A stretch of DNA of 62,985 bases, the filler included, from Chiloscyllium plagiosum (lineage: Eukaryota): the NCBI RefSeq assembly GCF_004010195.1. It is 11 parts of 11 records of this genome, joined end to end, with 100 filler letters (N's around TTAATTAATTAA, not from the genome) between each part and the next. Parts side by side here need not be neighbours in the genome. Positions count along the whole stretch, not along the records: positions 1 to 29,436 come from NC_057746.1; 10 more parts are not named here. One strand, written 5' to 3'. Below, piece after piece: positions 3,211 through 29,436 of this stretch; the first letter of the stretch is position 1, and each line of letters opens with the position of its first letter. Under the pieces are notes generated by a model. That model saw nothing but the letters and a program-made list of their open reading frames with translations. It was not told where the DNA came from and ran no database searches. Both the position numbers and the translations under genes were made by a program.

Positions 3211-3557
3211 AGATTAGATTAGATTACTTTAGATTTTTTTTAGATTAGATTAGATTACTTTACAGTGTGGAAACAGGCCCTTCGGCCCAACAATTCCACA
3301 CCGACCCGCCGAAGCGCAAACCACCCAAACCCCTACATTTACCCCTTACCTAACACTACGGACAATTTAGCATGGCCAATTCACCTAACCTGCACATCTT
3401 TGGATGAAAAAAAAAGCGAGCAGCTGTCCTCGCTGCTCCGGGTCTCTCTGTCCCACGCAGACACGGGGAGAATGTGCAAACTCTGCACAGACAGTCGCCT
3501 GAGGCAGGAATTGAACCCGGGTCTCTGGCGCTGTGAGGCAGCAGTGCCGCCCACCGT
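3211..3557 (-). mobile_element. HE1-type SINE with internal rearrangement
   Basis: (TTAGA)n tail; matches 61507-61822 except at about 3406-3450. Confidence 0.85.
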
Positions 3558-3620
3558 GTACTATTAGGCCAAGGATTTTTGTGATTCCTGTGTTTGTTGT
3601 TGAGCTGGTGGCGGACCCTG

Positions 3621-3748
3621 TTCACTCTCACTTCCACTGATTCTTAATTCACAATCTGAATCACACAGTATGAGTCAGCTTACTGGCAGCTGAGGCAGCT
3701 TGTGACTGTTCGTCGTTTTAATTGGTTATATCCCTGAGATGAACCAAT
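3621..3748 (+). promoter_or_regulatory. MHC class I proximal promoter: ISRE-like, AP-1, X1/X2-like and Y-box motifs
   Basis: TTCACTCTCACTTCC 3621-3635; TGAGTCA 3671-3677; GCTTACTGGCAGC followed by TGAGGCA 3691-3697; ATTGG 3721-3725; CCAAT 3744-3748. Confidence 0.55.
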
Positions 3749-3933: not shown

Positions 3934-3985
3934 ATGTTGCTGATCCTTTTCTCCATTTCCCTGTGTTTTTCCTGGGTCTCTCCCG
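3934..3985 (+). CDS. MHC class I exon 1, signal peptide [17 protein letters not shown]
   Basis: ATG, hydrophobic 17-mer, then G|GTAAGT donor; lies downstream of promoter-like motifs. Confidence 0.8.
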
Positions 3986-6900
3986 GTAAGTACAGAATTC
4001 AGCTTTCCATTCTCTCTCTCTCTTCTCCAGCTCAGGGCGAAGACAGGAACTCTCCTGGGACTTCACAGGAATGTAAATGTCAGTCGGTTTCTGTCAGGAA
4101 TTAATGTCACAATTGTACTAGTGAAGAGCTGAGGGGCTAATTTCCTTTCATGTCTGTCTCACTCACTGTGTGTCTATGTTCTTTCTCTGACATTCTGTGT
4201 CTCAGTGTGCCACAATCTGTGTGTGTCGGGGGGAGGGGGGGGGGGGGTGCTGTGTATCCTTCTGCATGTATGTGTGTCGCCAGAGATGGTAGTGCCTGAT
4301 ATCGAAGATTCCTTTCTCTCTCCCTCTCTCTGGTTGCCCCTCTCTCTCTTTCTCTCTCTCTGGTTTTCTTGCTCTCTTTTTTTTCTGTGCTCCTGCCTCT
4401 TTCCGTGGACATGTTTCACTGTCTGTTTAATTGTTCCTTTCTGTCTAACAGTCTTGCCCTTTCTCTCTCCCTGCAGTTTTTGCACTGAGGGAAACAGCTT
4501 TTTCTCTCTCTCCTTCTCCTTCCCCACAGACCTAAAATGAGCTGTTGGTTTCTGACGCCCAGTTGTCACATGAGTCTGAAAGTGCCTGATGTTGTCTGCT
4601 CCTCGTTAGTAGCCTCAGTATTTGGATAGGAGACTGTCTGTCTTAAAATACCAGGGGCAGTCATCTTTGAGGCTCCTGTGGCCAGGTCAGAAGGTCTAGG
4701 TCTGAGTCCCACCCTGGAGATTTGTCATAACAAGTTGATTCAAAATGCTTACAGCAGCCTGTTTAATGCTTGAACTGAAAGAATGGTCGACAATAAAAAG
4801 GCAGCTTCCAGGAGCATTTTCTTTCCGATCAGAAATCTTCCGATGTATAGACTCATAGAGATGTACAGCATGGAAGCAGACCCTTCGGTCACACCCATCC
4901 ATGTCGACCAGATATCCCAAACCCAATCTAGTCTCACCTGCCAGCACCTGGCCCCATCCCTATTTTCACTCAATGAAGATTCACTGATCCAAATCTTCAG
5001 GTCTTTGAATTATCAGATTTGGGATCTAGATTGGGAGGCGCAAATCAGGATTCTGGGATTATCTGGGATTCTCCACAACTGTTCGTAACATGGACTTCAG
5101 AATCAGAGACTTGGGTTAGGTATATACACTCTAGAAACACGCTAGGCCAGGTAAAGTTACCCAGTTTAATGCCTGGGTCTACCAGTGATCAGCTAATCAT
5201 TACAACCAGACACCCTAAGCCTGGGACGATATCCTGAGGAACCTGTACAGAGGTGTCCTGGAGCTGAGATAACTGAACTCCAAAAACTACAACCGTCTTC
5301 CTGTGTGCTCCAACCAGCGAAGAGTTTTCCCTTGATACCCATTGATTCCAGTTTTGCTAGAACTTCTTGATGCCATATTTGTCAAATGCAGGATAAAGGG
5401 CTGTGGAAGCAGGCAGGAAACTGGAGGTGAGACCAGGATGAGATCAGCCATGATCATGTTAAATGGCGGAGTGAGCTCGAAGGGCTGAATTGCCCACTGC
5501 CACTCCTAATTCGGGCCAGTCACTCTTTCCTCACCTCTTGAACTGAAAGAAGTAGCTGAAAAAGCAGAAAAGGGTCGGGTTACAGAAGTCGCCACCAGTC
5601 AGGTCAATGCATTCAGTATTGACCCTGATCAGAGGATGTGTGCCAGTGTCTTCGGGGCTTTTTCAGCTGCCGTTAGAACTATGGTAGGAATTTGGTGGTG
5701 TGGATACACTATCCAGATTTCAGCACTCACACCATCATTCTGATTTCACACCGTCACTACGTGGGTGAGTTTTCCTTGATCAGGTGGTAGTGTTTGTAAG
5801 TGTTTATTCAGATGTCCCTTGAATCTGTTAATCTTTATTTTCTACAGACAGGAATGCATTTACAGTTATGTATTTAGCTACCTCTGGCACTGCTGACTTA
5901 CCCGAGTATGTTGGAGTGGGAATGATCAATGGAGTTCCAGTGGCCTATTATGACAGCGGTACCCCTCAGATAATCTCCCGTCAGCAGTGGATGACAGATG
6001 CCTTTGATGAAGAATACTGGGAATATCTCACAAATCGAGGGAATAAACATTGTGCCATTGCAAAAGAGAACTTGAAGATGATAATGAAGAATACAAACCA
6101 GACATCCGGTAAGAGCAACAATACACATACTTCCACTTACCCTTTCTTTATTGTTTCTTCTTCACCCAAAGCTCTGTTTCCATGTGATGCAGTGATTTGT
6201 GGTAGAGTGTAGTCCTTTCGATTTAGCCTACTATATTCACTGCTTGTGATGTGGTCTCCACACACTGGAGAGATCATGCACTCACAGGTGACCATTTTGC
6301 ACAGCATTTCTGTTCACTCTGTGACTCCAGCTTCCTGTCAGCTGATGTTTTATTGATCTACTGAGTTTCCACTCTGATCTTTCTGACCTCAGTCTCCACA
6401 ATAGACAAATGAACAAGGCCAGTGAGTGTGGAGACAGGGTCAAGGTCACAGAACAGATTACAAGTTGGCTTCAAGACAAAATAGAGAACGGGAGTAAACG
6501 ATACTTATTCAGAGCTGCAGAAGGTGGGAAGTCTTCAGACCTGGGACTACTGCTGTTCACAATTTACATCAATCCTTTGGACTTTGGAATCAAAACTTTT
6601 TTAAGTGCAAATGACATGAAATTGGAGGGAGTTGGCTGTGCTTTCTAGGAATTGGAAAGTTATTTATTTGTTAGTAGCTGCAGGTCTAGGTGGGGGGAGA
6701 AGAAAAGGAGATCTTGCCATATAAACACATTATTCACTAAAATCTGCATTTCAGCTTAGCAAAGCCATTGAACAGTGAACCAAGCACTAGGTTTTATATC
6801 TAAAGGAGCAGCATTAAAAATTAGAGAAATTATGCTAAATTTGTATTGATCACACACTGCAACTCTTGTTGCCATATTATGAAAAGGATAAAACATTGGG

Positions 6901-9900: not shown

Positions 9901-12900
9901 AGAGAGGCTGGTGCAGTGATCCTATCTCGTGAGCTGATTGAACTTGCTTTATTGACTACACTCCCCTGGAGATGAGTTCCTCACATTGATTTCCTTGCTG
10001 ATCCTTTTTCATTGACAGTGCGGGTATTGCCAGGATGGCTTCATGTCCCGAGGGGGGGGAACAGGTTTTACCTCCTCCTGTACATTCTCAAAACTATGAT
10101 ATACTGCCCAAGTTCCAGAGAACTGCTTGGGTTTCACAAAATGAAGATATTCACAGACAATAGATTTCTTCCATGCAAGTGTTCCTTCAGTACTGTGTAC
10201 AAACTTGGTTTTACAGTAATAAATCCTGCTGTGAACGAATCAATAAAGAAATCTATTGTAATAATTAGCTAGTTTAATTTTACTAGTATAGCAATGCAGA
10301 GCCCACAGAGAAACCTATTACTGTATTACTGAGCGCACAGAGAAATCCATTACAAAATAAATATACTTTTCTAACGGTAGTACCTTTTGTTTACTGTTCA
10401 TTACTGACAGGAATTCACATTTTCCAATGGATAAGGAAAGTTGAAATAAATGATGACAGCTCCACTAATATCGCGATGCGATTTGGATTTGATGGAAAGG
10501 ACTTTATTAGTTTAGAGCCGGACAGAATGAGATGGGTCGCATCCAATCACTTTGCAGTGAAGACTGCAGAGAAATGGAATTCAGATGAATCCTGGAACAA
10601 ATATTGGAAATGGCAGTTGGAAATAGAACTTGTTGAGCGCTTAAAACTACGCTTACGTTTTGGAAAGGAATATCTCAAAAGGACAGGTATTTATTTCAGT
10701 TCTGATCTAACCTCACTGATCTATGAAACCGTTCTCCCATTACATTCAGTGTCTGTCTATTGTTTGTGGTTTCACCCTTTCCCATCACAGTTCAGCCTGA
10801 AGTGTTCATCTCCAGGAGGGAGCCCAATGGTCAGGACAAGCCGCTCACTCTCTCCTGCCTGGTCACTGGGTTTTATCCTGTAGACATCGAGGTGACCTGG
10901 CTAAGGAATGGAGAGGTCATGTCTGAGACCCAATCCTCGGGGATACGACCGAACCACGATGGGACCCATCAGATCCAGAAAGAGATTGAGATCAGTACTG
11001 GGGATGAGGATCAATACTCCTGTCACATTGAACACAGCAGCCTGGCAGAGGCCCAGCTCTATCAGTGGGGTAAGGAACTATAATCGATATTCATGTGTGA
11101 GGGAGAAAGAGAACAGGGAGAGTGTGTGTAACTAAAAGGATCGAATGAATGAGATATACATAGTTACAGGCAAGAGAAACTGAGACTGTGCCGAAGAAAC
11201 AGATTCAAAAAAAGGAATAAGACAGAAAGAAATGTGGAAAAGTAAAATGAAATACGTCACTAAGCAAGCTATATATTTTTACATTTTGTAATTTTTCTGA
11301 TGGTTTGGCTGCAGGGATTTTTGAATGAATTCAGATTGCCATGTAGCTGTTTGTGTACTGGCAACAGACCACCGGTTAATTCTACACATCACTTAAACTT
11401 TCTGAGAAACTGAATTTACCAGAGATTTGGTGAAGACATTTTGTCAAAATGATGTTTGTCACAAATCACATTTAGTTGGAGGCACCATAATTCCTTGACA
11501 CCATACAAAAGCATATTAAATATTACAATGGCCTCAATCATTCATGCAAAGCATGAGCTGGTATGTAAGTGGGGACCCAATAGTTAGAGACAATCGAGCA
11601 AGGTTTGTTTGGCATCTCCAGTAACTGGTGAGAGTTTTATCTTCCAGCTAGTATACTGTAACATAAAATAAATTTACCAAATGAGTAACTGGTTAACTAA
11701 GTATACAAATACATTTAGATGAAGATAGCAGCACTGATAGTGTGTCATAATTGTAATAAAATGACAGGTCGTGCAGTGTACTGCAATTTTAAAGAACCAT
11801 AACTATGGTAAGTGTCTGCAATTTAAACATGTTTGTATCTGAGTTACCAAGGTAGATTCAGAATTGCAGACATGAGAGTCAGCAAGAGGGTGAGGTACCA
11901 GTTACATTCCTTAGGTTAAGTAGAACTTTAAAGTTGGCCGACTGACTGGGAACAGGAGAGTGTGACTGTGAGTCAGGCAGATGCTGGGATTCAGGATGGA
12001 GTGGTAGGGGAGACTTGGCCAGTAATTGGGAAGCATTTGCCACCAGAGCAATGAGATTAAAGACTATAAGGTGGATGTATGACTAATTGTAGCTCTGTGG
12101 TTCAGGATCCCGTTTGGTGGTGGGGACAGGGTGTGTAGAAAGAATTTTGGTAATAATGGGATATGACGATTCTCTGCAACTGTGAGTGAGAGTTCCCCAA
12201 TGTTTGTGTTCCATTGCCTGGTGCCTTATTAAGGATGTCTTTTCATATCTAGAGATGAACTTGGACTGGAGGTCAAGGGCAGCAAGGGATTCAGTTGTTG
12301 TGGTCCATGCAGAGCCAATGATAGGAATAGAACTCAGAATGAATTTTCACTGACTGAGTTTGAGGAGTTGGCGTGTGCTAAAATGCAAAACCTCAAAGAT
12401 ATTTAGAACAAAGAACAAAGAAAATTTACAACCCAGGAACAGGCCCTCCAGCCCTCCAAGCCTGAGCCGATCCAAATCCACTGTCTAAACCTGTCGCCCA
12501 ATTCCTAAGCATCTGTATCCCTCTGCTCCCCACCTACTCATGCATCTGTCCAGATGCATCTTAAATGAATCTACTGTGCCTGCCTCTACCACCTCTGCTG
12601 GCAATGTTTTCCAAATACCCACCACTCTCTGTGTGAAGTAATTGTCACGTATGCATATGTGGTTGGGGGAGACAGCTGGGACTGAGGGAGAAAGTTGTTA
12701 GACCGATACAATCAATATACTATGCACAAAAAATTAAAAAGTTACATGTCTCATAGTTCCTATTTAGCAGTTACATTCAAATCTAATAAGAAAACTATGT
12801 ATACCTGGATTGTTATCTCAGCCATGTGTTAACCTGAATAGGATCAAGTGGATTAAATGTTAGGCTCAAAAGATAGTTTAAAGAAAAGGGGCCTTGATTC

Positions 12901-15900: not shown

Positions 15901-18900
15901 AAATAGGTTCTCCCTGTCCACCCTATCTAACCCTCTGATTATCTTATATGTCTCTATTAAGTCACCTCTCAACCTTCTTCTCTCCAACGAAAACAGCCAC
16001 AAGTCCCTCAGCCTTTCCTCGTAAGACCTTCCCTCCATACCNNNNNNNNNNNNNNNNNNNNNNNNNNNNNNNNNNNNNNNNNNNNNNNNNNNNNNNNNNN
16101 NNNNNNNNNNNNNNNNNNNNNNNNNNNNNNNNNNNNNNNNNNNNNNNNNNNNNNNNNNNNNNNNNNNNNNNNNNNNNNNNNNNNNNNNNNNNNNNNNNNN
16201 NNNNNNNNNNNNNNNNNNNNNNNNNNNNNNNNNNNNNNNNNNNNNNNNNNNNNNNNNNNNNNNNNNNNNNNNNNNNNNNNNNNNNNNNNNNNNNNNNNNN
16301 NNNNNNNNNNNNNNNNNNNNNNNNNNNNNNNNNNNNNNNNNNNNNNNNNNNNNNNNNNNNNNNNNNNNNNNNNNNNNNNNNNNNNNNNNNNNNNNNNNNN
16401 NNNNNNNNNNNNNNNNNNNNNNNNNNNNNNNNNNNNNNNNNNNNNNNNNNNNNNNNNNNNNNNNNNNNNNNNNNNNNNNNNNNNNNNNNNNNNNNNNNNN
16501 NNNNNNNNNNNNNNNNNNNNNNNNNNNNNNNNNNNNNNNNNNNNNNNNNNNNNNNNNNNNNNNNNNNNNNNNNNNNNNNNNNNNNNNNNNNNNNNNNNNN
16601 NNNNNNNNNNATTAAACTCCATTTGCCACCTCTCAGCCCAGCTCTGCAGCTTATCTATGTCTCTCTGTAACCTACAACATCCTTCGTCACTATCCACAAC
16701 TCCACCAACCTTAATGTCATCTGCAAATTTACTAACCCACCCTTCTACGCCCTCATCCAGGTTGTTTAGAAAAATGACGAACAGCAGTGGACCCAACACC
16801 GACCCTTGCGGTACACCACTATTAACTGGACTCCAGGATGAACATTTCCCATCAACCACCACCCTATGTCTTCTTTCAGCAAGCCAATTACTGATCCAAA
16901 CTGTTATATCTCCCACAAGCCCATTCCTCCGCATTTTGTCCAATAGCCTACTGTGTGGAACCTTATAGAGATTCTGATTTAATCATGTATTGGAGCCACA
17001 GGAAAACATCAGCAGATAATCTCAAAAGAGGTAAAGAAAAATATCAGAAGACTCTTACTGGGGCAAGTCAGTCATGATGTGAGCAGCAGTCAAACTCAGA
17101 GAGCCTCCTCACAATAACATTGAAGAAACAATTGTATCGAGCAGTATTGAGCTGTGTGCCATTGAGCAGAGACATCAGATCTTTATGTTCCACTCGGAAG
17201 TCAGGCCTTTGAGACAGGTTGGAAGAGAGCACTGCAGATTCAGAATCTCCCCTTAAAGGCATTCAAGGCCCATTTCATCCCAGAGCAATACCTGCAATCG
17301 AGTGAATGTGATTTATTCAGAGAGCCCAGATTCCAGGGAAATCCATTGAATCAGTTCTGACAGGCCTGTGAGAGTTTGTTAGTTGACGTGAGTGTGGAGC
17401 ATTGAGAGTTGAGCTTATTCGTGATCGGGTCATCATCAGACTCTGCAGTGAAAAGCTATTAGTTTTCTTTAGGGCTAAACACTGGGATTTAACACCTAAA
17501 CAAGCAGTTCATTACAGTGTTTAAGGCAAAGGAAAAACACAGAATTGGGCAATAATGTGGGAAAATGCCTAAATTTTCGATGATTCAGTTAGTCAGGTAG
17601 ATCAGAAGTGCCAGGGTTGGACAGTTTGAGTTATAGGGAGAGGCTGAATGGATTGGGACTCTTTTCCCCGGAGTGTTAGAAGCTGAGGGGTGATCAGATT
17701 TATAAAATCATGAGGGGCATGGAAAGGGTAAATAGGCAAGATCTTTTCCCTGGGGTGAGGGAGTCCAGAACTAGAGGGCATGGGTTTAAGGTGAGAAGGG
17801 AAAGATTTAAAAGGAACCTAAGGGGCAACTTTTTCCTGCAGAAGGTGGTACGTGTATGGAATGTGCTGCCAGAGGATGTGGTGGAGGCTGGTACAATTGC
17901 AGCATTTAAAAGGCATCTGGATGGCTATATGAATAAGAAGGGTTTGGTGGGATACGGGCCAAGCGCTGGCAAATGGGACTAGATTGATTTAGAATATCTG
18001 GTCAGCATGGACAAGTTAGACCGAAGGGTCTGCTTCCATGCTGTGTATCTCTATTACTCAGTGAGACAGCCCTCCTCACTCAAAAGCCTGTGGACACAGG
18101 GAAAGAGCAGGAAAGTAGAAACTAGGGATAGGAATAATCCCATTTGGCCCCTCCAGCCTGCTCATTATGACTGTGGCTGACCATCCAACGCATCACCCTG
18201 TTCTTTCTGCTTTTCTCCCATTTTCTTTGCTACCTTTAAGTGCGATATCCAACACTTTCCTGAAATCATACAATGTCTTGGTCTCAACTGCTTTCTGTTG
18301 TAGCAAATCCCACAGGGTCACCACTCTCTGGGTGAAGAAATGTCTCTTCATTTCAGTCCTAAATGCTTCAGCCAAGTGTCCTTTGACTGTGGCCCCTGGT
18401 TCGGGAAAGCAGTACAGCAGCCATTTAATCGTGTTCGCCTTATGGAGCTCAGCAAACCATGGAGTACAAGAGAAATGGAGGAACGGCCAGGAGTTGAAGG
18501 AAGACCGGTCACTTGCAGCAAGTTCTCAGATCAAAAATTATAGCAAAAGGGAAAAGAAATGACACCTCTAAAAACCAGATGCTTCAAGAAATTGGAAGTT
18601 AAAAAAAATCTCTTATGGGTAGTTACGGAGGAAAACCGGAGATTATGTTCAGTCACCCTAGAAACAAAAGGCTTCGCAAAAGAATTTAAGATAAGCACTG
18701 ATATTGGTATGACGATCTTGGCAAGCCTTTTGCAATGGCCCCAAGAAGGAGTTGTAACCGGCAAAGCTCAGATTGCAGTTGACATATTGTCTCAAGATAC
18801 AGTGGATTTCGATTTCGATTTAGACTTTGTTGTCATGTGTACAAAAGTACAGGAGTGCAGTGAAAAGTTTTCAATGCTGTCCCACACAGTGCCATCTTAG

Positions 18901-21900
18901 GTACAAGCACTTAGGTACAAAAACTTAAGAACGAATAGAAAGAACAAAGTTAAAAGCTAAACATTACAGTTGCTCTTAGCATAGCTGGAAAAATTAAAGA
19001 ATAAAATGAAACAATACAATCCTTCTTCACATTATGTCAAAAAAAAAAGAAATAAAGCTAAATGTTCAGCCATTGCTTAGCTGTTCTGGAACTGCACTTC
19101 CTAAAAGGCTCATCCTCCTACACTTTCTACACACTCGCTCGATGTTCCGTCATCACTGCAAATGTCGAGGGATCCTCCATGGCTGCGTTGGATCTCAGGG
19201 AGGAGAAAATTAGAACTGCAAATGCTGAAACTCAGAGTCAAGAGTGTGGCACTGGAAAAGCACAGCCAGTCAGGCAGCATCTGAGGAGCAGGAGAATCGA
19301 CGTTTTGGGCATAAGCGCTTTGGGCTGTAAGCACCACACTCTCGATGCGTTGGATCTCAGACTGACAAAGCTCTGATCAAAGTCCCACCCAAGCAGATCC
19401 TCTGTCTCACCTTTGGTCCATGCACAGGCATCTGGAATTCACTGAGAGTCCTGGGTCAGGCCCCAGCTGCTGCCTAACATGAGACATCTAGCTAGCCGCC
19501 AAATTCAACGAGCCCGATACTGCCGCCGCCACTGCCTTGCCCCAGAAGGTAAGTTTGTAGACAAAAAAAACTTTAAAAAAAATTAAAACTGAAAGAAAGG
19601 AAACAATAATAGAGAAGGAAGAAGAGCAGGCCAAATGGCCAAGACTATTCAGCCACCATCTTGCAGACGTGGGGACTGCCATAAGTCTGCACAGTGCTGT
19701 CACCACAATCAAGCTCTTCAACAGAGATAAAATAATATGAGAAAGAAAAGAGGATCAGGAAAGAGAGGGGAGGAGAAGAAAAAAAAAGAAAATTGGGTGG
19801 AGTGAACGATACCCAGGATCGGAAGCCCTACTCTGCTGCCGTTGTATTGAATAAAAAGCTTTGGTCTTTGTTATGGGCAACAAAAAAATGCTTCTACTTC
19901 TAAAACAAATTGTTTGCCAGCTTCTAAGAAGAAATTTCAAAAAACCAGGGACTGCTAAAGTTTGGTGCAGAATAGCCCACATCAGAAAATTCTGTCAAGA
20001 AGGTTGGGCAAGTGATCAGATGTGATGGAAGCATCATGACCTCAGCAGACCATATTGTATGACAGTGGTCCACAATTTGTGAATTGGTACTTTGTGATGG
20101 ATGATTTTTCAATCTTTAATCACAGCCTGCTAACACGAAAGGCAATGCCCAAAGAAATTCTTCAGAAAGTCTATGGAGATCACTTGGAAAAAAACAAGTT
20201 TAGAGTTTGCGTGTAATGAATGATGGTCAGGAACTATTTTAAAAAAAATGGTGGATTTACTCTGCCACACGTGTATAATCCAGAAACTGCCTGGCACCAG
20301 CAGAACTATGATTTTTTTCTTGAGATCTCTCTGACAGGCCATGGAAATTTGGAAATGGACCTCTTCCACTTTCAAGGGAACCAGCATATTTTATCAAAGT
20401 AGATATTTCTCTATGTGACTAAACATTGCCAGACTTCACACTATAACTGAGGCAGTGATCAAATCACTGTGGAACATCTTTTCACAAAGAGTTTTTCAGA
20501 TAAGTTTGTTTTAGTCAGTGGCCCACAATTTGTGAATTAATCCTTTCAGAGATTCACAGCATCTAAAAATGCAAATAAGGAGCTGAAGTGGATCGTTCAG
20601 TCCCCTGAGGCTGCTCTGCAATTCATTGCTGATCTCTATGTGTCTTCAACTCTACATTCCCATCTACCCCTGAAGACCTTTGAAAATCAAAGTATACTGC
20701 ATGCATCAGCTCTCCTTTATCAATTCTCTTAGGAACTCCAATAAGCTTGTCAAACATGGTTTTCCATTCACAAACTCATGCTAACACTGCTCAATCAGAT
20801 CATTATTAACCAAGTGTCTATTTATCCCTTTCTCTATAGAATTTTCCCTGCTACTTTTGTAAAGCTATAGACTGTTGTTCCCAGTTTTCTCTCTCACTTC
20901 ATTCTTAAATAGTTGGGTGTCATTTGCTATTGTTCAACCTGCAGGAATCATTCAGAATTATAAAGAATATTTGAAGGTAATCACCAATACCTAACCCAAA
21001 GCTTATCTTTTATAGTCACCCCCTTCAACACTTAAGGATGTATACCATCAGATTCAAGTGATTCGTCTACTTTCAACCCCTTTAATTGCTCCAATACAAT
21101 CTTCTTTACTCATACTAACATCCTTCAACTCCTCATTCTCCCTAATCACTTGGATCTCTAGTTCTGGGAGACTTATGCTTTTTCCTCCCGCAAAATAGAT
21201 GCAAAGTAATCACTTTGCTTTTCTACCAATTCTATATTCCACATTTTAACTTATCCTAACTCTGCCTTTAATGGACTCATTCATTTTAGCCAACTGTTTC
21301 CATTTTACGTATCTTTTGCAATTTTTCCAGTTTATATTTATATTTCTGCAAGATTAAATTTCTAATTTATTCTTCCTTTCCTCAAAATCTTCTTGGTCCT
21401 CAGGCAACTGTTTCAGGCAACTTTATAGACCTTTGATTATAACCATATATACTCCTGAACTTCTTTTGTCTGTCATGATGTCTAGCTTTTTTTAGTTTGG
21501 AGGAATGGATAGTTGCTGAGGTCATTAGATTAGATTAGAATACCTACAGTGTGGAAACAGGCCCTTCGGCCCAAACGGTCCACACCGACCCTCCGAAGTG
21601 TTATCCACCCAGACCCATTTCCCTCTGACTAATGCACCTAACACAGTATGGGCAATTTAGCATGGCCAATTCACGTGATGTGCACATCTTTGAACTGTGG
21701 GAGAAAACTGGAGCACCCGGAGGAAACCCACGTAGACACAGGGAGAATGTGCAAACCCCACACGGACAGTTACCCAAGGCTGGAATCGAACCTGAGACCC
21801 TGGTGCTGTAAGGCAGCAGTGCTAATCACTGAGCCACCGTGCCGCCCATGTAATAGTTCTCTAGAAGACATGCCTGTAGAAAGGAAATGGATAGTTTTTT

Positions 21901-24900
21901 AAAGTATTTGCTCAATTCCCCTCAATCAATTTGTGCCTCATGCCTTCAGCATTTCTCTAGATGGAAGTGGTCATGGGTTTGGAAGGTGCTGTCTAAGGAT
22001 CTTTGGTGAAGATGAGATCCCTGATTTGGGCTGTTAATCTGGCCAAATCAGGGAGCCCTAGCTGACAGATAAAAGCAAGAGTGGGTCCCATACTTCCCGC
22101 GGGAGCCTGTGCCCCACAACCTGAACCGCCTCCGAAACTTTAATTTTGTCTCATTTAGGGATGTAACAAGGAAAGCCCTGTATAGACTGCTGCTGCACAC
22201 CGTCCACCTCTTCTCCCTCATCCACCGTCCGGACACGCCTTGGCGTGCCCATTTGCCACCAGGCGGCGGGGATCCCCAGTGGAGGGCTCTCTATGCGGGA
22301 GTCCTCCCCCTTTCTCTCGGGGATCTGGGGTGGAGGGTGCTGCACGCAGCAGTCCCCTGCAACCGCAGATTGCGGTGGTTCACGGACTCCCAGCCCAACT
22401 GCTTGTTCTGTGGCGCCGTGGAGTCCGTGGACCACGTGTATATTGGGTGTGGGCGTTTGCACTCCATTTTTGATTTCCTTAAAAACCTTCTCCTCTGTTT
22501 TTGGCTGCACTTCAGTCCCACGCTCCTGATCTTTGGGCACCCGGTACGGAGGAAGGAGGGCAGGTCTGAAGACCTCCTCGTGGGCCTGCTCCTGGGCCTG
22601 GCCAAACTGGCCATCAACAGGTCCAGGCAGCGGGCCGTGGAGGGGGTCGTTAAGGCCGACTGCCTGCCCCTCTTCCGCGGTTACGTTAGAGCCCGGGTGT
22701 CCTTGGAGAAGGAGCACGCGGCGTCGACCAACACCCTGGAGTTGTCCAGGGAGAGGTGGGCGCCGCAGGGAGTGGAGTGCATCATTTCTCCCTCCAATTC
22801 TATTTTGATTTAGTCCCTACCCTCCCCTTCACTGTTTTGATCACACAGCACTGCCCTTTGATGTGAAGGGCAGTGTTTGTCACTGGCCACCTGGGTGTTT
22901 TCCTATCTTCCTGGTGGTGGAACTTGAATAAAGATTCGTGCACTTTGTGTCTTTCACTGTGTCTCACACCTGCACACACACACACACACATACACACCAT
23001 GGGTGCTGGGGAAATAAAATAAGAAAAAAAAATATAAACAGGAGTGGGACATGCCCTGACGTACTCATTAAAAAAAAACAAGAGTGACAGATAAAAGCAC
23101 TCTGATCTGGTTCTGAGGGAGCTGGAATAATGTCAAGGACTTTCCACGTGTAAGTAAAGGATGACTTGGTGATAGGAAAACAGCTTCTGTGGAATTATTT
23201 CAGTAACTTTATGTCATCTACCTTGTTGTGAATGCTGTGTGCAGTTACTTGACAGTGCAATTTAATATGGCCCAGAGTTGGGAAGTTAGAAAACACAGTC
23301 CTCAGGCAGAGCAATCGCATTGTCATATTGACCAAACCAGATAGGAATGTTCAGAAGGACCCAAAAAGTATCAAGACTGAATGAGTGTAATGCCCATAAA
23401 CTGTGAGATACTGAGAAAGAACTACATGGACTATTGTACAGAATTACAATTACATCACAGAAATGGTTGAAGCCTCTTGCCCTTGATCAGTGGTGATGAG
23501 AGTAAGACCAGAATAAACTATAAGATGCTGCAAAAACACAACCTGTGAAGTTCAGATATTGCTGTTGGTTGGGGGGTGTTAATGGTGGAAGAAATGGTTA
23601 AATAACATCCATGTAAAAGTTGAGAAAAACTTGGGGGCACTGTGGTATTATAATAATGCATATGATGATGATGATATAGAACATGATATCGTGTTTATTT
23701 AATCAGTTATATGCACAAGATGGTGAAAAAATGATGGAATAGTTTTTACTTGTAAGAGACATATGTCCAGTTACTCTTTTTTTACACAACAGTGTAAATA
23801 AAAGGCTTTGCAAAAACCTATTAGAGACAGACAGCAGTCATTCTTAAGTAAATGGGGAACCATTACCAGCCATAGATTTCAAAGAAGAGACTGGGGCAGT
23901 TATCCTCCCATGTCCTGAATAGATTTTTGTTGTTGTTGTGTCACCATAGTTGTATCAGACTACAGGGGCTGCTCTCTCATTAGAAAGAAGTGACTGGTGG
24001 TGATTCAGCCTGAGGGCCACCTGACCTCAGGCAAGGGAAGAAGTTGAGAAGGAGAGTCCTTTATCGTAACCTCATACCATGATGGGAATCGAACCCTTGT
24101 TATTGGCGTCACACTGCTCTGTAAAGCAGCAAGCCAGCCAACTGAGCTAAACCAATTCCCCTTGAATAGAACAATGAGCCAGAAGCCTTTAGCAATACAG
24201 CCAAAGCTGGCCTTTATTTCGGTGGGAATTAGGTGTTTGTCAATAGCTGAGGTTTGAGAATGATCAATCGTGCCACCTCTTGGTAATGTAATCCTGGGAG
24301 CAATGACAACATACAAACAGGCTAATTCAGAACTGAATGGGTTCAGGAACAGAGGAATAATCATGATCTTATTCAAATGTGTTTCAGAAGTCCCAAGAAA
24401 CAGCGCTGGACACTCACATCTTGAAATGTTAGGATTCGTGATCATTCCACTGGCTATTATAGTTGGAATAATCGGATTAGTAATGTGGAAAAGGACTCAG
24501 AGAGGTGAGTATCAGAGGAAATAGAATATCAAACCAGGCAGCCTCGACCATCACTAATCATTTTCCCTAACGAGACAGCATCCTTACTGTGCTCTGGGAC
24601 TCTGGTGGCTTGACCTATTTATATGGGTAGTCTAGTTCAGTTTCTGTTCTGTTGTAACCTCTAGGATGCCACAGAGGTTTAGAAGGAGGGCCTGTTTCCA
24701 CACTGTAATGTAATGTAATCTAATCTAAAAAAAAAATATGGGTAGTCTAGTTCAGTTTCTGTTCTGTTGTAACCTCTAGGATGCCACAGAGGTTTAGAAG
24801 GTGAGTCCTTCATGGTAACCTAAGCTGGAAGGTGAATTGAACCCATGCTGTTGGCATCACTCTGCATTGCACTGTATTCTGGATGTGGTCTCACCAAATC

Positions 24901-26630
24901 CTTGTGTAAATAAAGCACAATCTCTTTACTTTTGTATTCAATTCCCTTTGCCATGAGCAATAATATTCTGCTGGCTTTCCAAAATTCCCACATTGGCTGA
25001 GATTACCATGAAGTACTCTCATTCTCGACCTCTCCAGTTGCCTAAGGTATGGTGACCCTCAGGTTAAGTCACGACTTGTTGTCTTTCTCTCTCTCTCTCT
25101 TATGAGAAAGCAGTCCTATGGTCCAGTCAGTACAACTAACCTCTTGTAATTTGCGCACAAGGATGCCCAGATCCCTCTGCATGTCTGTAATCTCCCACCA
25201 TTTAGATAATATGCTACATTTATGCTATTTACGACAAAATGGACAATATTTTAATTATACACTATTTTCCACATCTTTGCCCAATCACCTAACCTATCAA
25301 TATCCTTTTGTCACCTCCTTGCAGCTCCTTCACAATCTTCTTTCCCATCTGTCTTTGTGTCATCAGCAAATTTAGTAACCATACCTTCCATCCCTTCATC
25401 GAAATAACTGGTACAGATTGCAAAATGTTGAAGTCCCAAAACTGAACTTTGTGGCTCATCAGTTGTTACTTCTTGCCAGCCAGAGGATGACCCAGTTATG
25501 CATACTCTCTATTTCCTGTTTGCTAGCTCATCTTCTCTCCATGACAACATGCTCCCTCCACCAATGTGAGTGTAGGAATGAGTAGGAAAGTGAAGCTGAG
25601 GCAGAAGATCAGACATGATTGTATTGAAGAGTACAACAGGCTATTTCAGCCACTGAGCTCAAGTTGCTCTAATTTCTATCTCACTTACCGAAATAAGCTG
25701 AGCATTTCCAGCAATTTTGGTTTGAGTTTATTTATCTCTTAGGTTTATTGTTTCCCATTGTAGTCTCTCTTACTTTTGCACAGGCCCCAGCACATATTAA
25801 AAGCGGGGTGAAAAAAATAGTAGTGCAAGACACATGAAAGCCATAGTAATGTACAGCATGAAAACAGACCATTTGGTCCAACTCGTCCATACCAATCAAA
25901 TATCTCAACCTAGTCTAGTCCCATTTGCCAGCACTTGGCCCATATCCCTCCAAACCCTTCCTATTCATAAACCCATCCAAATGCCTTTTAAATGTTGCAA
26001 TTGTACCAGCTTCCACCACATCCTCTGGCAGCTCATTCCATACATACACCACCCTCTGTGTGAAAAAGTTGCCCCTTAGGTCCCTTTTATATCTTTCCCG
26101 TCTCACCCTAACCTAAAAAGACTTTGTCTATTTCCCCTATCCATGCCCCTCATGATTTTATAAGACTCTATAAGGTCACCCCTCAGCCTCCGACGCTCCA
26201 AAGAAAACAGTCCCAACCTACTCAATCTCTCCATATAGTTCAAATCCTCCAACCCTGGCAACATCCTTGGATCTACATGCATACATTGACAGTTAAAAGT
26301 CCTAATTCTTACCCACAGATTCACCTGGAAATCTACAGCAACAATGCCATGGGAAGTCTGGAGAAGAACATCAAACAGGTGAGATTCCAAATTTTTCTAA
26401 ACACTGATTAAATCACTAATCTATTTCTATCCACATTTACACTTTTTCCAAATGTTGCACAGTTGACGTGTTTAATGTTTTTATTAGTTTCTACGCAACC
26501 ATTTCTGGAAACGGGACCCACTCTCCACCAACAGGAAGCCACGGATAATAAAGTGGAACTGGAGCTCATTGAATCCCACACATTACTCAAGGCAGAGCCT
26601 GTTCAGAGAGACTCAGAACCTGAAACCTGA
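3934..26630 (+). CDS. Nonclassical MHC class I heavy chain gene, 7 exons (3934-3985, 5848-6108, 10411-10686, 10791-11069, 24388-24504, 26319-26378, 26488-26630), about 395 aa
   Basis: All six introns are GT-AG and phase 1. The exons total 1188 nt and splice into one open frame: leader, alpha1, alpha2, alpha3, TM and two cytoplasmic exons. The last two exons are less certain than the first five. Confidence 0.9.
5848..6108 (+). CDS. MHC class I alpha1 exon
   Basis: Acceptor tttctacag, donor gtaag, 261 nt. Motifs [24 protein letters not shown] and the N86 glycan site NQTS. Confidence 0.95.
6400..7400 (+). mobile_element. Old degenerate CR1-like LINE fragment
   Basis: Remnants [11 protein letters not shown] and ANDMKL of the RT motifs, with many stops. 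Confidence 0.65.
10411..10686 (+). CDS. MHC class I alpha2 exon (no cysteines)
   Basis: GIHIFQW...[11 protein letters not shown]...AVKTAEKW...GKEYLKRT; 276 nt with AG/GT boundaries. Confidence 0.95.
10791..11069 (+). CDS. MHC class I alpha3 (C1-set Ig) exon
   Basis: [17 protein letters not shown]...RPNHDGT...[10 protein letters not shown]; preceded by a 104-bp intron. Confidence 0.97.
15610..16965 (-). mobile_element. CR1 LINE 3' part (RT domain), spans an N gap
   Basis: [22 protein letters not shown]; [19 protein letters not shown]; FFTQRVV.VWN.LP. Confidence 0.93.
17608..18060 (+). mobile_element. CR1 LINE 3' end
   Basis: SRTRGH..KV...NFF.Q.VV.VWN.LP...[10 protein letters not shown] plus 3'UTR. 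Confidence 0.88.
18400..20620 (+). mobile_element. Fragmented Gypsy-type LTR retrotransposon remnant
   Basis: Protease-like FKISTDIG; integrase-like MDLFHFQG and D/VSGPQFVN; interrupted by other repeats. Confidence 0.55.
21526..21846 (-). mobile_element. HE1-type SINE
   Basis: Full head-to-tail match to the other copies. Confidence 0.88.
22007..23202 (+). mobile_element. Probable solo LTR (TG...CA) interrupted by the Tx1-like element
   Basis: TGAAGATGAGATCC...CCAAAT..ATAAAA before the insert; AGTAAA...TTATTTCA after it. Confidence 0.45.
22084..23030 (+). mobile_element. 5'-truncated L1/Tx1-like non-LTR retrotransposon (ORF2 C-terminus, 3'UTR, A tail)
   Basis: ORF 22109-22813 with WRVLH and the CCHC knuckle [17 protein letters not shown]; AATAAA, (CA)n and poly(A). 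Confidence 0.88.
23960..24155 (-). mobile_element. Second tRNA-derived SINE family (related pieces at about 8870-9110, 24800-24870, 24990-25140 and 52500-52590)
   Basis: Boxes TTAGCTCAGTTGG and GGTTCGATTCCC; recurrent CCTCAGGTTAA..CACCAGT core. Confidence 0.6.
24388..24504 (+). CDS. MHC class I connecting peptide/transmembrane exon
   Basis: tttcag|..[25 protein letters not shown]|gtgagt; hydrophobic span followed by a basic stop-transfer segment, phase 1-1. Confidence 0.85.
25840..26270 (-). mobile_element. CR1 LINE 3' end
   Basis: [17 protein letters not shown]; [10 protein letters not shown]. Confidence 0.88.
26319..26378 (+). CDS. Putative cytoplasmic exon ([20 protein letters not shown])
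   Basis: Acceptor cttacccacag, donor G|gtgaga, 60 nt, open in phase 1. Confidence 0.65.
26488..26630 (+). CDS. Putative terminal cytoplasmic exon with ESHTLL dileucine motif
   Basis: Acceptor ttttattag; open in phase 1 to TGA at 26628-26630; AATAAA at 26694-26699. Confidence 0.6.
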
Positions 26631-27019
26631 CCCAGTGGGAGAAACCAAACTCAGAGCGAACAAGCATTGAGTCTGGTTCTGACAGATGATGTAAATAAAG
26701 TGTAAAGTAATCCAGGTAATGACATTCTCCTAAGCAAGTACAAAGAACAGGAATAATGTAGATTTTACTGAGTCACTGAGTCCACATCCTGGAACTAAAT
26801 CATCACCTGAAGAATAATCAGACCCCAAGAATTTGGAGGAGCTGAGTGAATGAGAATGATGACTGAGAATAACCAGCTTGTTCACAAAGGGAAGGAAAAT
26901 CTGAAAAAGTTATAATAGTATTAAAATAGAAGTAACTTCCAATACAGATTTGTTAAAAATGTGTTTTTCGATGTTTCAAACAGTGGTGAAAAATTATTAA
27001 CCACAAGCATATTAAAGGT

Positions 27020-27800
27020 AGGACATTGAGTGTGCTGCATTTGAAGGAGAGAGACAGTTTTGAAGAATATAACTGATAGAAACAACACACCATGTCATTC
27101 GAGAAAGATTGGCTAAAAGAACAAATTGTCCAACGCTGTGCAGCCACAAATGATGAACAAGTTCCTCTGTTGCGCTCTCTCGCTTTGGAAGTTCTGCACA
27201 GGATTATCACCCGGGTGAGGGATACTGTGAAAGACATAACACCTCCAAATAATGAGCAGTCAGTTACTGGGATCATTCAGACATTTAGAGCAAAACTGGG
27301 GGATGAGATACAGATTCCACAAGAGACACTGGGACCTGTTACTTTTCAGTCTGAAAAGATTAACGCCCCGAACTTCAAACAAGAAATTGAATTTTTATCA
27401 GAACAAATGATCTGACTGAAAGGGTTAAAAACTGGGAGAAGGACATTGCTGGGAAAATCACTGTTCTCCCCATCCAGTGAATTGTCCGCAATGTTATGTG
27501 GCTGTGGAGAGCGGTGTCCCTTCTGTGGAGTCCTGTGTGATTGTATGAACACGGGGCACACACAGCACAGCACTGAATATCACCGGAGCCAAGGGCTGAA
27601 TGAATACAGAAACAACATGAACGTGAAGTTAAGATCAGAGAATTAGACAACAGCTGTTGCCAGTTTCACAAATAAGGACATGAAATGGAATCCACATTGT
27701 GAGAAGGCCTTCAGAGATCTCAATGACCAGTGTAGACACTGGAACGTGCCTTCTGATAACAGTATCAAAACATTAGACCATTGGAAGAAAGACAAAACGT
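27020..27800 (+). pseudogene. GVIN1: Decayed C-terminal part of an interferon-induced very large GTPase (GVIN1/VLIG/URGCP family)
   Basis: One reading frame broken by stops (27413, 27644) gives GCGERCPFCGVLCDCMNTGHTQHSTEYHRSQGL...*TTAVAS...HWNVPSDNSIKTLDHWK. This matches the GVIN C-terminal pattern CPFC..C....H..H....HRPQG...CTS.VAS...W.I.PD......YWK as I recall it. Confidence 0.8.
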
Positions 27801-28710
27801 TCAGCAGATTTGGCAGCATCTGCGGGGAGACAAACAGTGTTAATGTTGCAGGCGATTATCTTTCATCTGAATTGGGACAAGTTTGACATGTGATATGTTT
27901 TATGGAGATGAAATGGGAATGATGAGAAAGTTTGGAATAGGGTGTAAGGTGGGAGACATTATGCACCATAAATTCTTTTGTCACTTAGAGTAACAGGGTT
28001 GTACTGAGGCAAATAAGAAATGAAAAGTGAGTCTGCTGTAGATGCCTCATGGTCACAGTGTCAGTATTTTAAAAGACATTGCGGTTTCACAGCTTGTGAC
28101 TTGAGGGTATGAAGATCTCTAACTCCATCTTACCTCAGATCACTTGAAGCATGACACCGACTAGCAGCCCAGACTGTTAGCCCAGACACCTATGTGCCTC
28201 AGGAATATAATGTTTGTACATAATAGTCAGCTGTAATCAGTATGTGCTGTATTCCTCAATATCGCAATTGAAAAAAAATGTTTTAAAATTGAAGACTGTG
28301 GAAGGCTGTGTATTTGAAAACACGTTTGCTGGAGCTCATTGTGAGTTATGTTTACCGTGCTGCTTTGCAGGCAGTGAGAAAAAATATCACGCCACTGGGG
28401 TGTGTGTTCGTGCAGAGTGAGATTCGGCCAGCAACAGATTGCTGTTTGGTTTATGCAGTTATAGTCGAGAGTGTGGTGCTAGAAAAACACAGCAGGTCAG
28501 GCAGCATCTGAGGAGCAGGAGAATCGATGTTTTGGGCATAATGCTCTCATCAAGATTGGAGGGAGTCCTAATGAAGGGCTTATGCCCAAAACATCAATTC
28601 TCCTGCTCCTCCAATGCTGCCTGACCTGCGTGCTTTTCCAGAACCACAGTCTCGACTATGATCTCCAGTATCTGCAGTCCTCACTTGCTCCTCCTTTGTG
28701 CAGTTACAGT

Positions 28711-28960
28711 CACAGCGCCAGGGTCCCAGGTTCGATTCCAGCCTCGGGCTGTGTGGAGTTTGCACATTCTCCCTGTATCTGCGTGGGTTTCCTCTGGATG
28801 CTCCAGTTTCCTCCCACCGTCCAAAGATGTGCAGGTTAGGTAAATTGCCCATACTGCGAGGTGCATTAGTCAGAGGGAAAAGGGTCTGGGTGGGTTATTC
28901 TTCGGAGGGTCGGTGTGAACTGGTTGGGCCGATTCACTGTAGGGAATCTAATCTAATCTA
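28711..28960 (+). mobile_element. HE1-type SINE, 5'-truncated
   Basis: Box B GGTTCGATTCC; (AATCT)3 tail. Confidence 0.85.
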
Positions 28961-29436
28961 AACTCCTGGTCAGAGGAACACCTTGAATACTTACAATAAA
29001 AGAAGAGAAATGTCTGGCCTGCTAAAATTGATTCTGTGTCTTTGTCATTGTACTGTAAAAGTAACTAAAACCTAATGAAAACCAATTATCTTCTCTCATC
29101 ATTTACTGTGGGTTGTTGACAAGTAACTTAAAGATTTTACATTTAGTATATCAATTGCCATGTGCCTCCTGCAAAAAAAATGAAAAAATTCAGAGAGAAT
29201 ATGTCTTTAACAGTCTCAAATTCAACACCACCACATCATTTCTTCATCAATTCTCACCCTGCCTCATTCCACTTCTACCCTTCCACTTCCTACTCCAGCT
29301 CCCCAACTTCCTTAACCCCCATTCAATTTCCCATCTCCACTTCCCCAATTTCTATCCCCGCAATTCCACTTCTCCCTCTTTCATTTTGTCTTTCTATTCC
29401 AGCTCCACTCGTCCCCCCACTGCCCATCGTCATACC

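Follow-up and report, generated by a model that had tools for sequence, protein, structure and literature searches.

Here we have shown that homology to the GVIN1/VLIG family spans the whole terminal exon of a class I-like gene of the shark Chiloscyllium plagiosum, from the splice acceptor onward, and that this exon is very probably what remains, after collapse, of the giant coding exon of an interferon-induced GTPase gene of the GVIN1/VLIG type. GVIN/VLIG reading frames are interferon-induced and lie largely within one giant exon. In the 62,985-nucleotide stretch of DNA that was analysed, hereafter the window, some 500 of the roughly 1650 GVIN codons are left in the terminal exon, in three colinear pieces that all lie on the plus strand (Table 1). 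The homology, the colinearity, the splicing, the frame and the lesions are direct observations; a nonclassical class I-like gene ending in a collapsed GVIN exon is, in our view, a highly probable explanation of them as a whole, and the gene appears to be what is left of a class I-GVIN fusion. The original prediction had proposed that the terminal exon derives from an internally deleted GVIN exon, and the three colinear pieces, the shuffle tests and a profile match with an iE of 5e-101 bear this out.

Table 1. Exons of the class I-like gene, pieces of the GVIN remnant and polyadenylation motifs, with positions counted along the window.
Feature	Position	Strand	Basis
Candidate class I leader exon with phase-1 GT donor, encoding a hydrophobic peptide that begins with Met	3934..3985	+	Script scan only
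Class I alpha1 exon	5848..6108	+	Pfam MHC_I positions 6-88, E 3.9e-7; splice sites; 59% to P0200 aa 1-39
Class I alpha2 exon	10411..10686	+	Pfam MHC_I positions 93-179, E 4.7e-12; 63% identity to P0200
Class I alpha3 exon, phase 1 at 3' end	10791..11069	+	Pfam C1-set E 5e-18; 89% over 92 aa to P0200
Connecting peptide/transmembrane exon	24388..24504	+	Spliced contigs X1, X16, X11; KD 2.88; 39% to P0200 TM region
60-nt cytoplasmic exon	26319..26378	+	GT..AG joints in 3/3 contig runs; frame
Terminal exon, as far as RNA contigs reach	26488..28480	+	Unbroken contig pieces X1, X11, X16
Last 47 codons of class I cytoplasmic tail and TGA (26628-26630)	26488..26630	+	Aligned to P0091, P0200, P0085
GVIN remnant N-part, acidic N-terminal region	26488..26729	+	tblastn with P0091 E 8e-8; shuffle tests
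GVIN remnant mid-part, ~P0091 aa 465-552, end of URGCP domain region	26737..26976	+	Frameshift-aware alignment
GVIN remnant C-part, last ~320 codons with CPFC/His cluster and own TGA	26990..27886	+	tblastn, HMM, three-frame translation
AATAAA, read through	26694..26699	+	Contigs continue past it in 3/3 contig runs
AATAAA, likely signal used (inferred)	28995..29000	+	Depth falls to 0-4 after 29064

The class I gene model was searched exon by exon in Pfam, and the alpha1 and alpha2 domains (PF00129) both scored above the gathering score, and alpha3 was recognized as an Ig C1-set domain (PF07654). The next exon, with its acceptor AG at 24386-24387, is in frame with alpha3 (phase 1) and encodes the hydrophobic segment expected of a transmembrane anchor. 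Phase, a shared G and homology to the Hemiscyllium ocellatum protein P0200 suggest that alpha3 joins this exon in the same RNA; of the exon preceding the transmembrane exon, the contigs cover only 22-27 letters. An alpha2 intradomain disulfide formed by two conserved cysteines is a feature of classical MHC class I. The translation of the alpha2 exon holds no cysteine and hence has no alpha2 disulfide, as is also the case in P0200, and the gene is therefore filed as nonclassical class I. It is predicted to encode a class I heavy chain whose cytoplasmic tail is 72 residues long and whose beta2-microglobulin association and ligand binding are putative, and the last 47 residues of this tail correspond to the GVIN upstream and N-terminal acidic region. 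The stop codon, the start of the terminal exon and the frame are as first read.

The C-part contains the conserved GVIN C-terminal region with its Cys/His cluster. It was matched by tblastn at 27032-27787, in one frame of the plus strand (P0090, 64% identity, E 1e-87), and an HMM built from the clade stretches the match to 26990-27862 with the iE given above, so that the proposed comparison with GVIN proteins by tblastn and HMM gave a clear match. When 27416-27643 was used as the query against 1.84 billion representatives, 79 proteins were found at E<=1e-3 and 5 at <=1e-10. Six of the eight matches that were looked up, mostly from sharks and a chimaera, bear the name interferon-induced very large GTPase 1(-like); among seven scanned for domains, four have URGCP and URGCP_GTPase, one has URGCP alone and two, both short fragments, have nothing. 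The identity of this region had thus been predicted correctly, but its borders had not: GVIN ancestry starts at 26488 and not some 400 bp after the class I stop, and the remnant ends at its own TGA at 27884-27886 and not at 27800.

Because the HMMs are weak over the other two pieces, the N-part and the mid-part rest on pairwise and frameshift-aware tests with shuffled sequences. The N-part reached z scores of 15.5 against P0091 (0/500 shuffles) and 12.2 against P0200, a score that none of 1000 shuffles attained, and of 6.2 and 5.0 against P0085 and P0090, respectively (0/500 each). It is matched by just 3 of the 13 shark GVIN N-termini, and an HMM of such N-termini scored an iE of 0.028 with P0091 included and a non-significant iE of 6 when P0091 was left out. 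In the mid-part, 0/100 shuffles reached the observed score for four of the seven GVINs (P0092, P0091, P0094 and P0096; z 6.1-9.5), whose alignments finish at equivalent protein positions, and six control runs on the reverse complement or on downstream sequence remained at background level; the clade HMM by itself did not score this piece above shuffles. The region 26488-27000 hence has GVIN ancestry, as both pieces beat their shuffles. An extension of the tblastn match of P0091 aa 21-55 into the intron at 26382-26486 was rejected as homology (shuffle z -1.0), and the similarity of P0091 aa 1-55 to the transmembrane exon of the window, reached by 6/1000 shuffles, is just suggestive. No P0091-like leader or transmembrane segment was found within the window, and the sole match of a protein homologue search with the P0091 N-terminus was P0091 itself.

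The gaps between the three pieces correspond to ~325 and ~855 GVIN codons, and most of the URGCP domain and the entire GTPase domain are therefore gone. The remnant pieces gave no Pfam match to the URGCP-like domain (PF25496), of which only the last ~88 codons can be traced, in the mid-part, and nowhere in the window beyond 26990-27890 was there a match to the URGCP-type GTPase domain (PF25683), HMM searches included, the best value there being E 0.078. None of the four Pfam searches with remnant pieces exceeded the cut-off, in a Pfam copy that reported no family for the GVIN C-terminal region, and PDB sequence searches with two of the pieces gave no match (best E 0.62). A single long open reading frame is absent: in-frame stops are present at 26628 and 26703 in the N-part, and stops at 27074, 27077 and 27644 in the C-part, which also has a frame-shifted stretch at 27373-27477 and compensating frameshifts near 27390 and 27468, and several more frameshifts and stops lie in the mid-part. 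An ACG at 26541-26543 aligns with the GVIN start Met of P0090 and P0200. The exon is a remnant of the GVIN family and not a functional member, and the view that any fusion is dead in this copy fits the stop after 47 codons, the two large deletions, the frameshifts and the further stops. In agreement with the statement that no recognizable transposon lies between the two parts, 26432-28311 is free of high-copy repeats, with a depth of 9-60 as compared with 1e3-7e5 in flanking repeat bins.

Spliced contigs in all three contig runs (X1, X16 and X11) join the transmembrane exon, the 60-nt exon and the terminal exon through GT..AG joints at 24502>26317 and 26376>26486 (cut +2), and no other terminal exon for the class I gene was seen in these runs. 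At the junction the class I frame passes into the native frame of GVIN, for which the chance expectation is 1 in 3. The native frame is kept past the TGA, with stops read as X, up to 26729; the coding-like text that had been noticed behind the class I stop is the GVIN N-terminal region continuing in the same frame. Unbroken pieces of the terminal exon cover 26486-28278 in X1, 26486-28480 in X11, and 26486-27798 with further pieces to 28468 in X16. The contigs being unbroken to 28278-28480, the GVIN debris, ~1.25 kb in length and followed by further sequence, is carried as 3'UTR by the class I mRNA. The first AATAAA is not where all transcripts end, and the terminal exon probably extends as far as a poly(A) site behind the second, which is located inside a high-copy repeat, so that its use is beyond what the contigs can show; it should be noted that contigs report neither RNA ends nor RNA levels, and that the raw-read RNA run X22 contributed 0 reads and carries no weight here.

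A homologous gene structure is predicted in Hemiscyllium ocellatum. The predicted protein XP_060706692.1 (P0200; 1932 aa), annotated as interferon-induced very large GTPase 1-like, contains MHC_I, C1-set, a transmembrane segment (aa 236-254), URGCP and URGCP_GTPase, which is exactly the class I, transmembrane and GVIN architecture that had been anticipated for other family members, and its class I part is homologous to that of the window. The order alpha1, alpha2, alpha3, transmembrane segment and GVIN exon is the same, as are the entry position, which aligns with aa 261 of P0200, and the frame; the tail is 41% identical, beside the exon identities listed in Table 1. In the tree, the remnant and the P0200/P0090 group are sisters (support 87/90), and the GVIN parts of the window gene and of P0200 are nearest relatives. 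P0200 differs in that its GVIN reading frame is intact over 1656 residues, with both URGCP and GTPase domains, whereas the window has the class I-side exon spliced to the GVIN acceptor and the GVIN frame but no intact GVIN. P0200 also differs in missing the leader, the first half of alpha1 and the 60-nt cytoplasmic exon. Class I exons were present in one of the 223 proteins fetched, MHC_I or C1-set occurred in none of the 120 listed representatives (of 184), and an Atlas search with P0200 aa 1-740 yielded no usable match. Other GVIN/URGCP models with a fused N-terminus are predicted as well (fn3-GVIN in teleosts, and CARD-, PYD-, RING/B-box- and AIG1-GVIN); all are annotation models in which, as in the window, the giant GVIN exon is the 3' partner, while the upstream domains differ. 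In the turtle butyrophilin-like TFJ96562.1 (P0107), also a prediction, V-set, Ig-C and a transmembrane segment precede URGCP, so that an Ig-superfamily ectodomain and a membrane anchor lie ahead of GVIN, as in the window.

These data may be read in a way that involves no fusion protein, and we give this possibility a little less than an even chance. A class I gene upstream of a GVIN gene or pseudogene would have lost, or would skip, its own last exon and splice into the acceptor of its neighbour for a stop and poly(A), without a class I-GVIN protein ever having been made or selected; the Hemiscyllium model would be a read-through or annotation merge, and the intact GVIN would be expressed alone, its start being the Met at aa 277. 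P0200, a Gnomon prediction, has an internal alpha1 Met as its first residue and no signal peptide, and may represent two adjacent genes merged by read-through. Consistent with this, its truncated class I part is joined to a GVIN part (aa 277-1932) equal to stand-alone GVINs starting at that Met (93.7% identical to the plain GVIN P0090, gapless), other GVIN models, some of them flagged as low quality, have assorted domains upstream, Ig among them, and in-frame entry has the chance given above, with just 16 codons from junction to Met. Against it, the junction occupies the same aligned position in the window species, in Hemiscyllium and in Heterodontus (P0091), it was assembled in each contig run with no alternative end, the frame is native to GVIN in both species, and predicted turtle models have a convergent Ig-TM-GVIN order.

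Two other explanations concern the RNA itself, and both seem very improbable to us. The GVIN remnant might be a pseudogene with its own transcription, situated behind a class I gene whose end is near 26715, the assembly having merged overlapping RNAs; the AATAAA at 26694 would suit such an end, and contigs, which report one mean depth, cannot show a drop. This conflicts with the fact that GVIN homology starts exactly at the acceptor of the class I terminal exon and not downstream of the stop, with single unbranched contigs, found in runs of three studies, that lead from the transmembrane exon across both joints as far as 28278-28480, and with the absence of any GVIN 5' exon and of a GVIN start codon, in whose place stands ACG. 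No more plausible is that the spliced form is DNA, a processed retrocopy elsewhere in the genome yielding intron-less contigs that say nothing on expression. X1 is labelled 'DNA?' and has a depth of 1.7-8.9 in unique intron bins, and the types assigned to X16 and X11 are guesses; however, the contigs of these runs add up to 103-286 million letters, much less than a shark genome, and the depth of X11 is 0 in unique intron bins versus 60 in exons.

In the explanation that we favour, that of a nonclassical class I-like gene with a collapsed GVIN exon at its end, the gene would consist of a candidate leader, alpha1, alpha2, alpha3, the transmembrane exon, the 60-nt cytoplasmic exon and the GVIN-derived terminal exon. 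The class I exons splice onto the GVIN acceptor at 26488, the frame continuing in that native to GVIN; the two internal deletions removed most of URGCP and the whole GTPase domain, and stops and frameshifts broke the remaining GVIN, so that the protein ends at the TGA after 47 codons of the exon. A full fusion protein encoded by the ancestor is a tentative proposal, which we would not call probable. Somewhat more doubtful still is the broader view that a membrane protein composed of a class I ectodomain, one transmembrane helix and a cytoplasmic GVIN GTPase exists in some sharks, at least in orectolobiforms like Hemiscyllium. The window gene would then belong to this family, having lost the GTPase but retained the acidic N-terminal stretch as its tail, and the predicted turtle butyrophilin-like models would be a convergent case. 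A co-regulated pair, which had been offered as another possibility, is unsupported: a scan of the window for ISRE-like motifs gave one match, at 14398, where 1.03 are expected by chance.

TRIM5-CypA is an example of a chimeric gene that arose by exon capture or read-through. As in chimeras of this type, the window gene owes a new C-terminus and 3'UTR to another gene, either a neighbour or an insertion; in contrast, decay has left only an acidic tail and UTR of what was captured, and the partners are two interferon-linked immune families. Human GVIN1 has been described as coating Burkholderia (bioRxiv 10.1101/2025.03.24.645074; eLife Insight PMC12133148). The window copy keeps three colinear stretches of the giant exon of the GVIN1/VLIG-1 family, including the C-terminal Cys/His cluster, but it is the last exon of a class I mRNA and not a stand-alone gene. 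Sharks have the nonclassical MHC-Ib lineages UBA, UEA, UDA, UFA and UGA (PMC10751288, PMC12562908), and the divergent window gene, with its MHC_I and C1-set exons and without the alpha2 disulfide cysteines, fits class Ib; it differs in its GTPase-derived tail and 3' exon, which the parts of these two papers that we consulted do not mention. No report of a class I-GVIN fusion was found in the literature searched.

Interferon is linked to MHC class I molecules as well as to GVIN GTPases, and the two act at opposite ends of immunity, the former by display to lymphocytes and the latter by attacking intracellular microbes in a cell-autonomous way. If the broader view is true, a ligand-sensing MHC fold would be coupled to a cell-autonomous cytoplasmic effector. 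The locus provides RNA-level proof of class I exons spliced into a GVIN exon in one shark, next to a predicted intact fusion in another, and makes it testable whether any shark produces a class I-GVIN protein and what its MHC fold would sense. On a more modest reading, an adjacent immune gene supplied a class Ib gene with a new cytoplasmic tail and with a 3'UTR of 2.5 kb. In either case, GVIN copy counts and class I tails are entangled in shark annotations. Variants in line with neutral decay of the remnant are visible among the runs: X16 has a 17-nt and a 1-nt deletion, and a T>C change at 27077 in X11 removes one of the stops.

The nonclassical MHC class I-like gene is a chimera that was formed by exon capture between two immune families and has since decayed. 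The original prediction of a GVIN1/VLIG GTPase remnant behind the class I tail is confirmed, and its interpretation of the terminal exon as a captured, internally deleted GVIN exon is supported by colinear GVIN pieces, by splicing, by the reading frame and by a predicted fused relative in Hemiscyllium ocellatum. The alignments together show that the terminal exon is colinear GVIN sequence from which about 325 and about 855 codons are absent, a loss that has removed the GTPase domain entirely and the greater part of the URGCP domain.

Features of the class I-like gene and its 3' end, by position in the window
Feature	Position	Strand	Basis or remark
Class I alpha1 exon	5848-6108	+	Pfam MHC_I, E 3.9e-7
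Class I alpha2 exon	10411-10686	+	Pfam MHC_I, E 4.7e-12
Class I alpha3 exon	10791-11069	+	Pfam C1-set, E 5e-18
Exons with canonical splice sites	24388-24504 (TM), 26319-26378, 26488 onward	+	frame reading
AATAAA poly(A) signal, proximal	26694	+	read through
AATAAA poly(A) signal, distal	28995	+	inferred signal in use

The class I exons were used one by one as single queries in the Pfam searches. The translation of the alpha2 exon contains no cysteine and hence lacks the alpha2 disulfide that is a feature of classical class I, and the gene is therefore filed as nonclassical. The hydrophobic (TM) exon lies about 13 kb 3' of the alpha3 exon, and the interval is filled with LINE-like ORFs and contains the assembly gap 16042-16610. 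Fragments of LINE/reverse-transcriptase-like ORFs were seen in the window at 15697-16943 (-), 17710-17982 (+), 22109-22813 (+) and, 3' of the TM exon, 25915-26390 (-); the assembly gap falls within one of them, and 22001-23000 is unusually GC-rich (0.566). As the acceptor AG lies at 24386-24387, a Glu codon arises from the final G of alpha3 (phase 1) and the two bases that open the TM exon, and the two exons are therefore in frame; the junction reads likewise in the Hemiscyllium homologue. The TM, 60-nt and terminal exons were joined by a script, which was used for the frame alone. The predicted cytoplasmic tail has 72 residues, and the class I frame occupies 47 codons of the terminal exon before the TGA at 26628-26630, the class I stop that had been predicted. 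The 60-nt exon is missing from the Hemiscyllium fusion model and adjoins a minus-strand LINE-like fragment (26103-26260), where the bins reach depths of 1e4-1e5. At 20 codons it preserves the frame, and it may have been added in this lineage only, possibly by exonisation.

The GVIN homology behind this stop is most evident in the C-terminal piece (26990-27886). The stop-free query 27416-27643 matched 79 proteins at E ≤ 1e-3, five of them at ≤ 1e-10, among 1,835,955,588 representatives. Among eight matches whose names were retrieved, six bear the name interferon-induced very large GTPase 1(-like) and two are "uncharacterized"; a domain scan of seven found URGCP plus URGCP_GTPase in four, URGCP alone in one and neither in two short ones. 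When 83 proteins were used in tblastn, 86 HSPs had E ≤ 0.01, and the 80 of them that were listed all lie within 26993-27892; with the cut-off relaxed to E ≤ 10, no HSP outside 26950-27950 was better than E 0.078. A profile built from the C-terminal regions of 40 GVINs gave a single match, 27035-27787 (iE 5e-52, positions 591-837 of 881), its first 590 positions finding no match, and a profile made from the eight nearest shark GVINs widened the piece to 26990-27862 (iE 5e-101). The latter profile matched 27373-27477 in another frame (iE 4.4e-8), which implies a pair of frameshifts, near 27390 and 27468, that compensate each other. There are in-frame stops at 27074, 27077 and 27644, and the piece ends at its own TGA (27884-27886). 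The nearest proteins are those of Chiloscyllium punctatum (P0090, 64%), Hemiscyllium (P0200, 63%) and Scyliorhinus canicula (P0093, 58%).

GVIN ancestry extends upstream through 26488-27000, the stretch where its absence would have spoken against a captured exon. The "coding-like text" that the original prediction had noticed past the TGA corresponds to an N-terminal GVIN piece (26488-26729): in tblastn, aa 56-145 of the Heterodontus francisci protein P0091 (XP_067865890.1) align with 26487-26729 (E 8e-8) in the class I tail frame, across the TGA at 26628 and a TAA at 26703. This region is acidic and variable. Three of 13 shark GVIN N-terminal regions matched it significantly (500 shuffles each, none reaching the score), namely P0091 (z 15.5), Pristiophorus P0085 (z 6.2) and Chiloscyllium P0090 (z 5.0), and the other 10 did not (z 1.6 or less); the Hemiscyllium protein gave z 12.2 (0/1000 shuffles). 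With an N-terminal HMM built without P0091, the piece was not significant. The middle piece (26737-26976) aligns with the final part of the URGCP region (P0092 aa 334-423, P0091 aa 465-552) while switching between two frames. It was examined by a custom frameshift-aware local alignment with seven GVINs and 100 shuffles per GVIN. The scores were 59-71 against shuffle means of 34, and were reached by no shuffle for P0092, P0091, P0094 and P0096, by two for P0090 and for P0089, and by 10 for P0095. All alignments have equivalent protein end positions, and six control runs (the reverse complement; 27900-28200) remained at background level. The clade HMM by itself did not lift this piece above shuffles, which makes it the weakest of the three.

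The region 26450-27900 was found in 20 listed runs from eight studies, and 17 of these, under four coded organism labels, contained half or more of its sampled words. We compared 23800-29436 (5,637 letters) with four runs: three contig runs (X1, X16 and X11), from three studies with two organism labels, and a raw-read single-cell RNA run (X22), which had no reads on this region and is no test either way. Each contig run contained one contig of shared structure, in which an exon at 24387/8-24504, a GT..AG gap of 1814 nt, an exon at 26319-26378 and a GT..AG gap of 109 nt are followed by a terminal piece that is continuous from 26486/8 to 28278 (X1), 28480 (X11) or 27798 (X16, with overlapping pieces reaching 28468). 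The depth in X11 was 0 in unique intron bins versus 60 for the spliced contig, and the contigs are therefore spliced RNAs. All read through the proximal AATAAA. The contig ends coincide with the onset of a high-copy repeat (bins 28312-29063, depth 4e3-8e4 in the three runs), and the depth past 29064 is 0-4; the distal AATAAA is likely, by inference, the signal used. This high-copy element lies within the distal 3'UTR of the terminal exon and includes the distal AATAAA, and ORFs at 3265-3637, 19062-19376 and 21648-21902 encode similar peptides. No bin of 26432-28311 has repeat-like depth, so the claim that no transposon separates the class I tail from the GVIN block holds. The GVIN debris evolves freely, as shown by deletions in X16 (17 nt at 27606, 1 nt at 27648) and a T>C variant in X11 that turns the stop at 27077 into a sense codon. 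Both runs carry C>G at 26612, changing Asp to Glu in the encoded tail.

That other family members might join class I, TM and GVIN sequences is borne out by a predicted protein of Hemiscyllium ocellatum (P0200, XP_060706692.1, 1932 aa), which contains MHC_I (aa 7-126), C1-set (137-216), a TM segment (236-254), URGCP (436-734) and URGCP_GTPase (766-1168). The window exons match it in order: alpha1 (59% over 39 aa), alpha2 (63%, 90 aa), alpha3 (89%, 92 aa), TM (39%, 38 aa) and tail (41%, 46 aa), and its TM-to-GVIN junction (aa 261) aligns with the window acceptor at 26488. From aa 277 to 1932 it aligns with P0090 without a gap, at 93.7% identity. A maximum likelihood tree built on the C-terminal 340 residues, in which all 26 rows were retained, places the remnant on a long branch (0.46) as sister to the P0200 and P0090 group, with moderate support (87/90). 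Class I exons were found in one of the 223 proteins retrieved; MHC_I or C1-set was absent from 15 GVIN proteins of one list and from the 120 listed of 184 in another, and as these lists hold cluster representatives only, P0200, a member of the 90% cluster of P0090, was hidden from them.

It should be noted that the P0200 model has no leader and only half of alpha1. Its GVIN part could be translated separately, from Met277, and an in-frame entry into the GVIN exon is a 1 in 3 event. In the window, an ACG (26541-26543) aligns with this residue, which is the start Met of P0090. The class I exons splice to an acceptor native to the giant GVIN exon and enter it in the frame of GVIN, and an ancestor with an intact GVIN exon would have encoded class I-TM-GVIN, as in the Hemiscyllium model. 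The present gene has lost the GTPase; its most likely product is a class I-like chain whose acidic tail derives from GVIN, and a long 3'UTR of GVIN debris follows.

Such a fusion is made more plausible by the diverse upstream exons (CARD, PYD, RING/B-box, fn3, AIG1 or Ig) of other predicted GVINs. In the turtle model P0107, URGCP is combined with V-set, a butyrophilin-like Ig-C and a TM segment. Among the predicted GVIN/URGCP proteins, upstream butyrophilin-like Ig (one with TM), fn3, AIG1 or RING/B-box domains occur in P0107, P0150 and P0209 (turtles), P0151, P0172 and P0147 (teleosts), P0093 (catshark) and P0126, P0136 and P0137. The giant GVIN exon looks as if it is either often used as a 3' fusion partner or often caught up in read-through annotation. 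A class I-GVIN fusion was not described in any of the titles and abstract openings searched. Shark MHC-Ib lineages have been described (PMC10751288, PMC12562908), and the main text of PMC10751288 does not contain the words "GVIN", "GTPase" or "cytoplasmic".

The predicted full-length GVIN P0091, which has no class I domains, begins like a signal peptide and has, right before the equivalent junction, a TM-like segment (aa 30-48) that is only weakly similar to the window TM exon (6/1000 shuffles). The full GVIN-type Pfam set is also listed for P0097 (a cyanobacterial record, Nostoc sp. FACHB-190, 2321 aa) and P0197 (the sponge Dysidea avara). These two point to contamination, to transfer or to a family of much wider range. 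In Chiloscyllium punctatum, a single 81-Mb record carries at least five near-identical GVIN1-like genes (P0090, P0199, P0201, P0202 and P0203), all of which have several isoform accessions; they form the group nearest to the window remnant.
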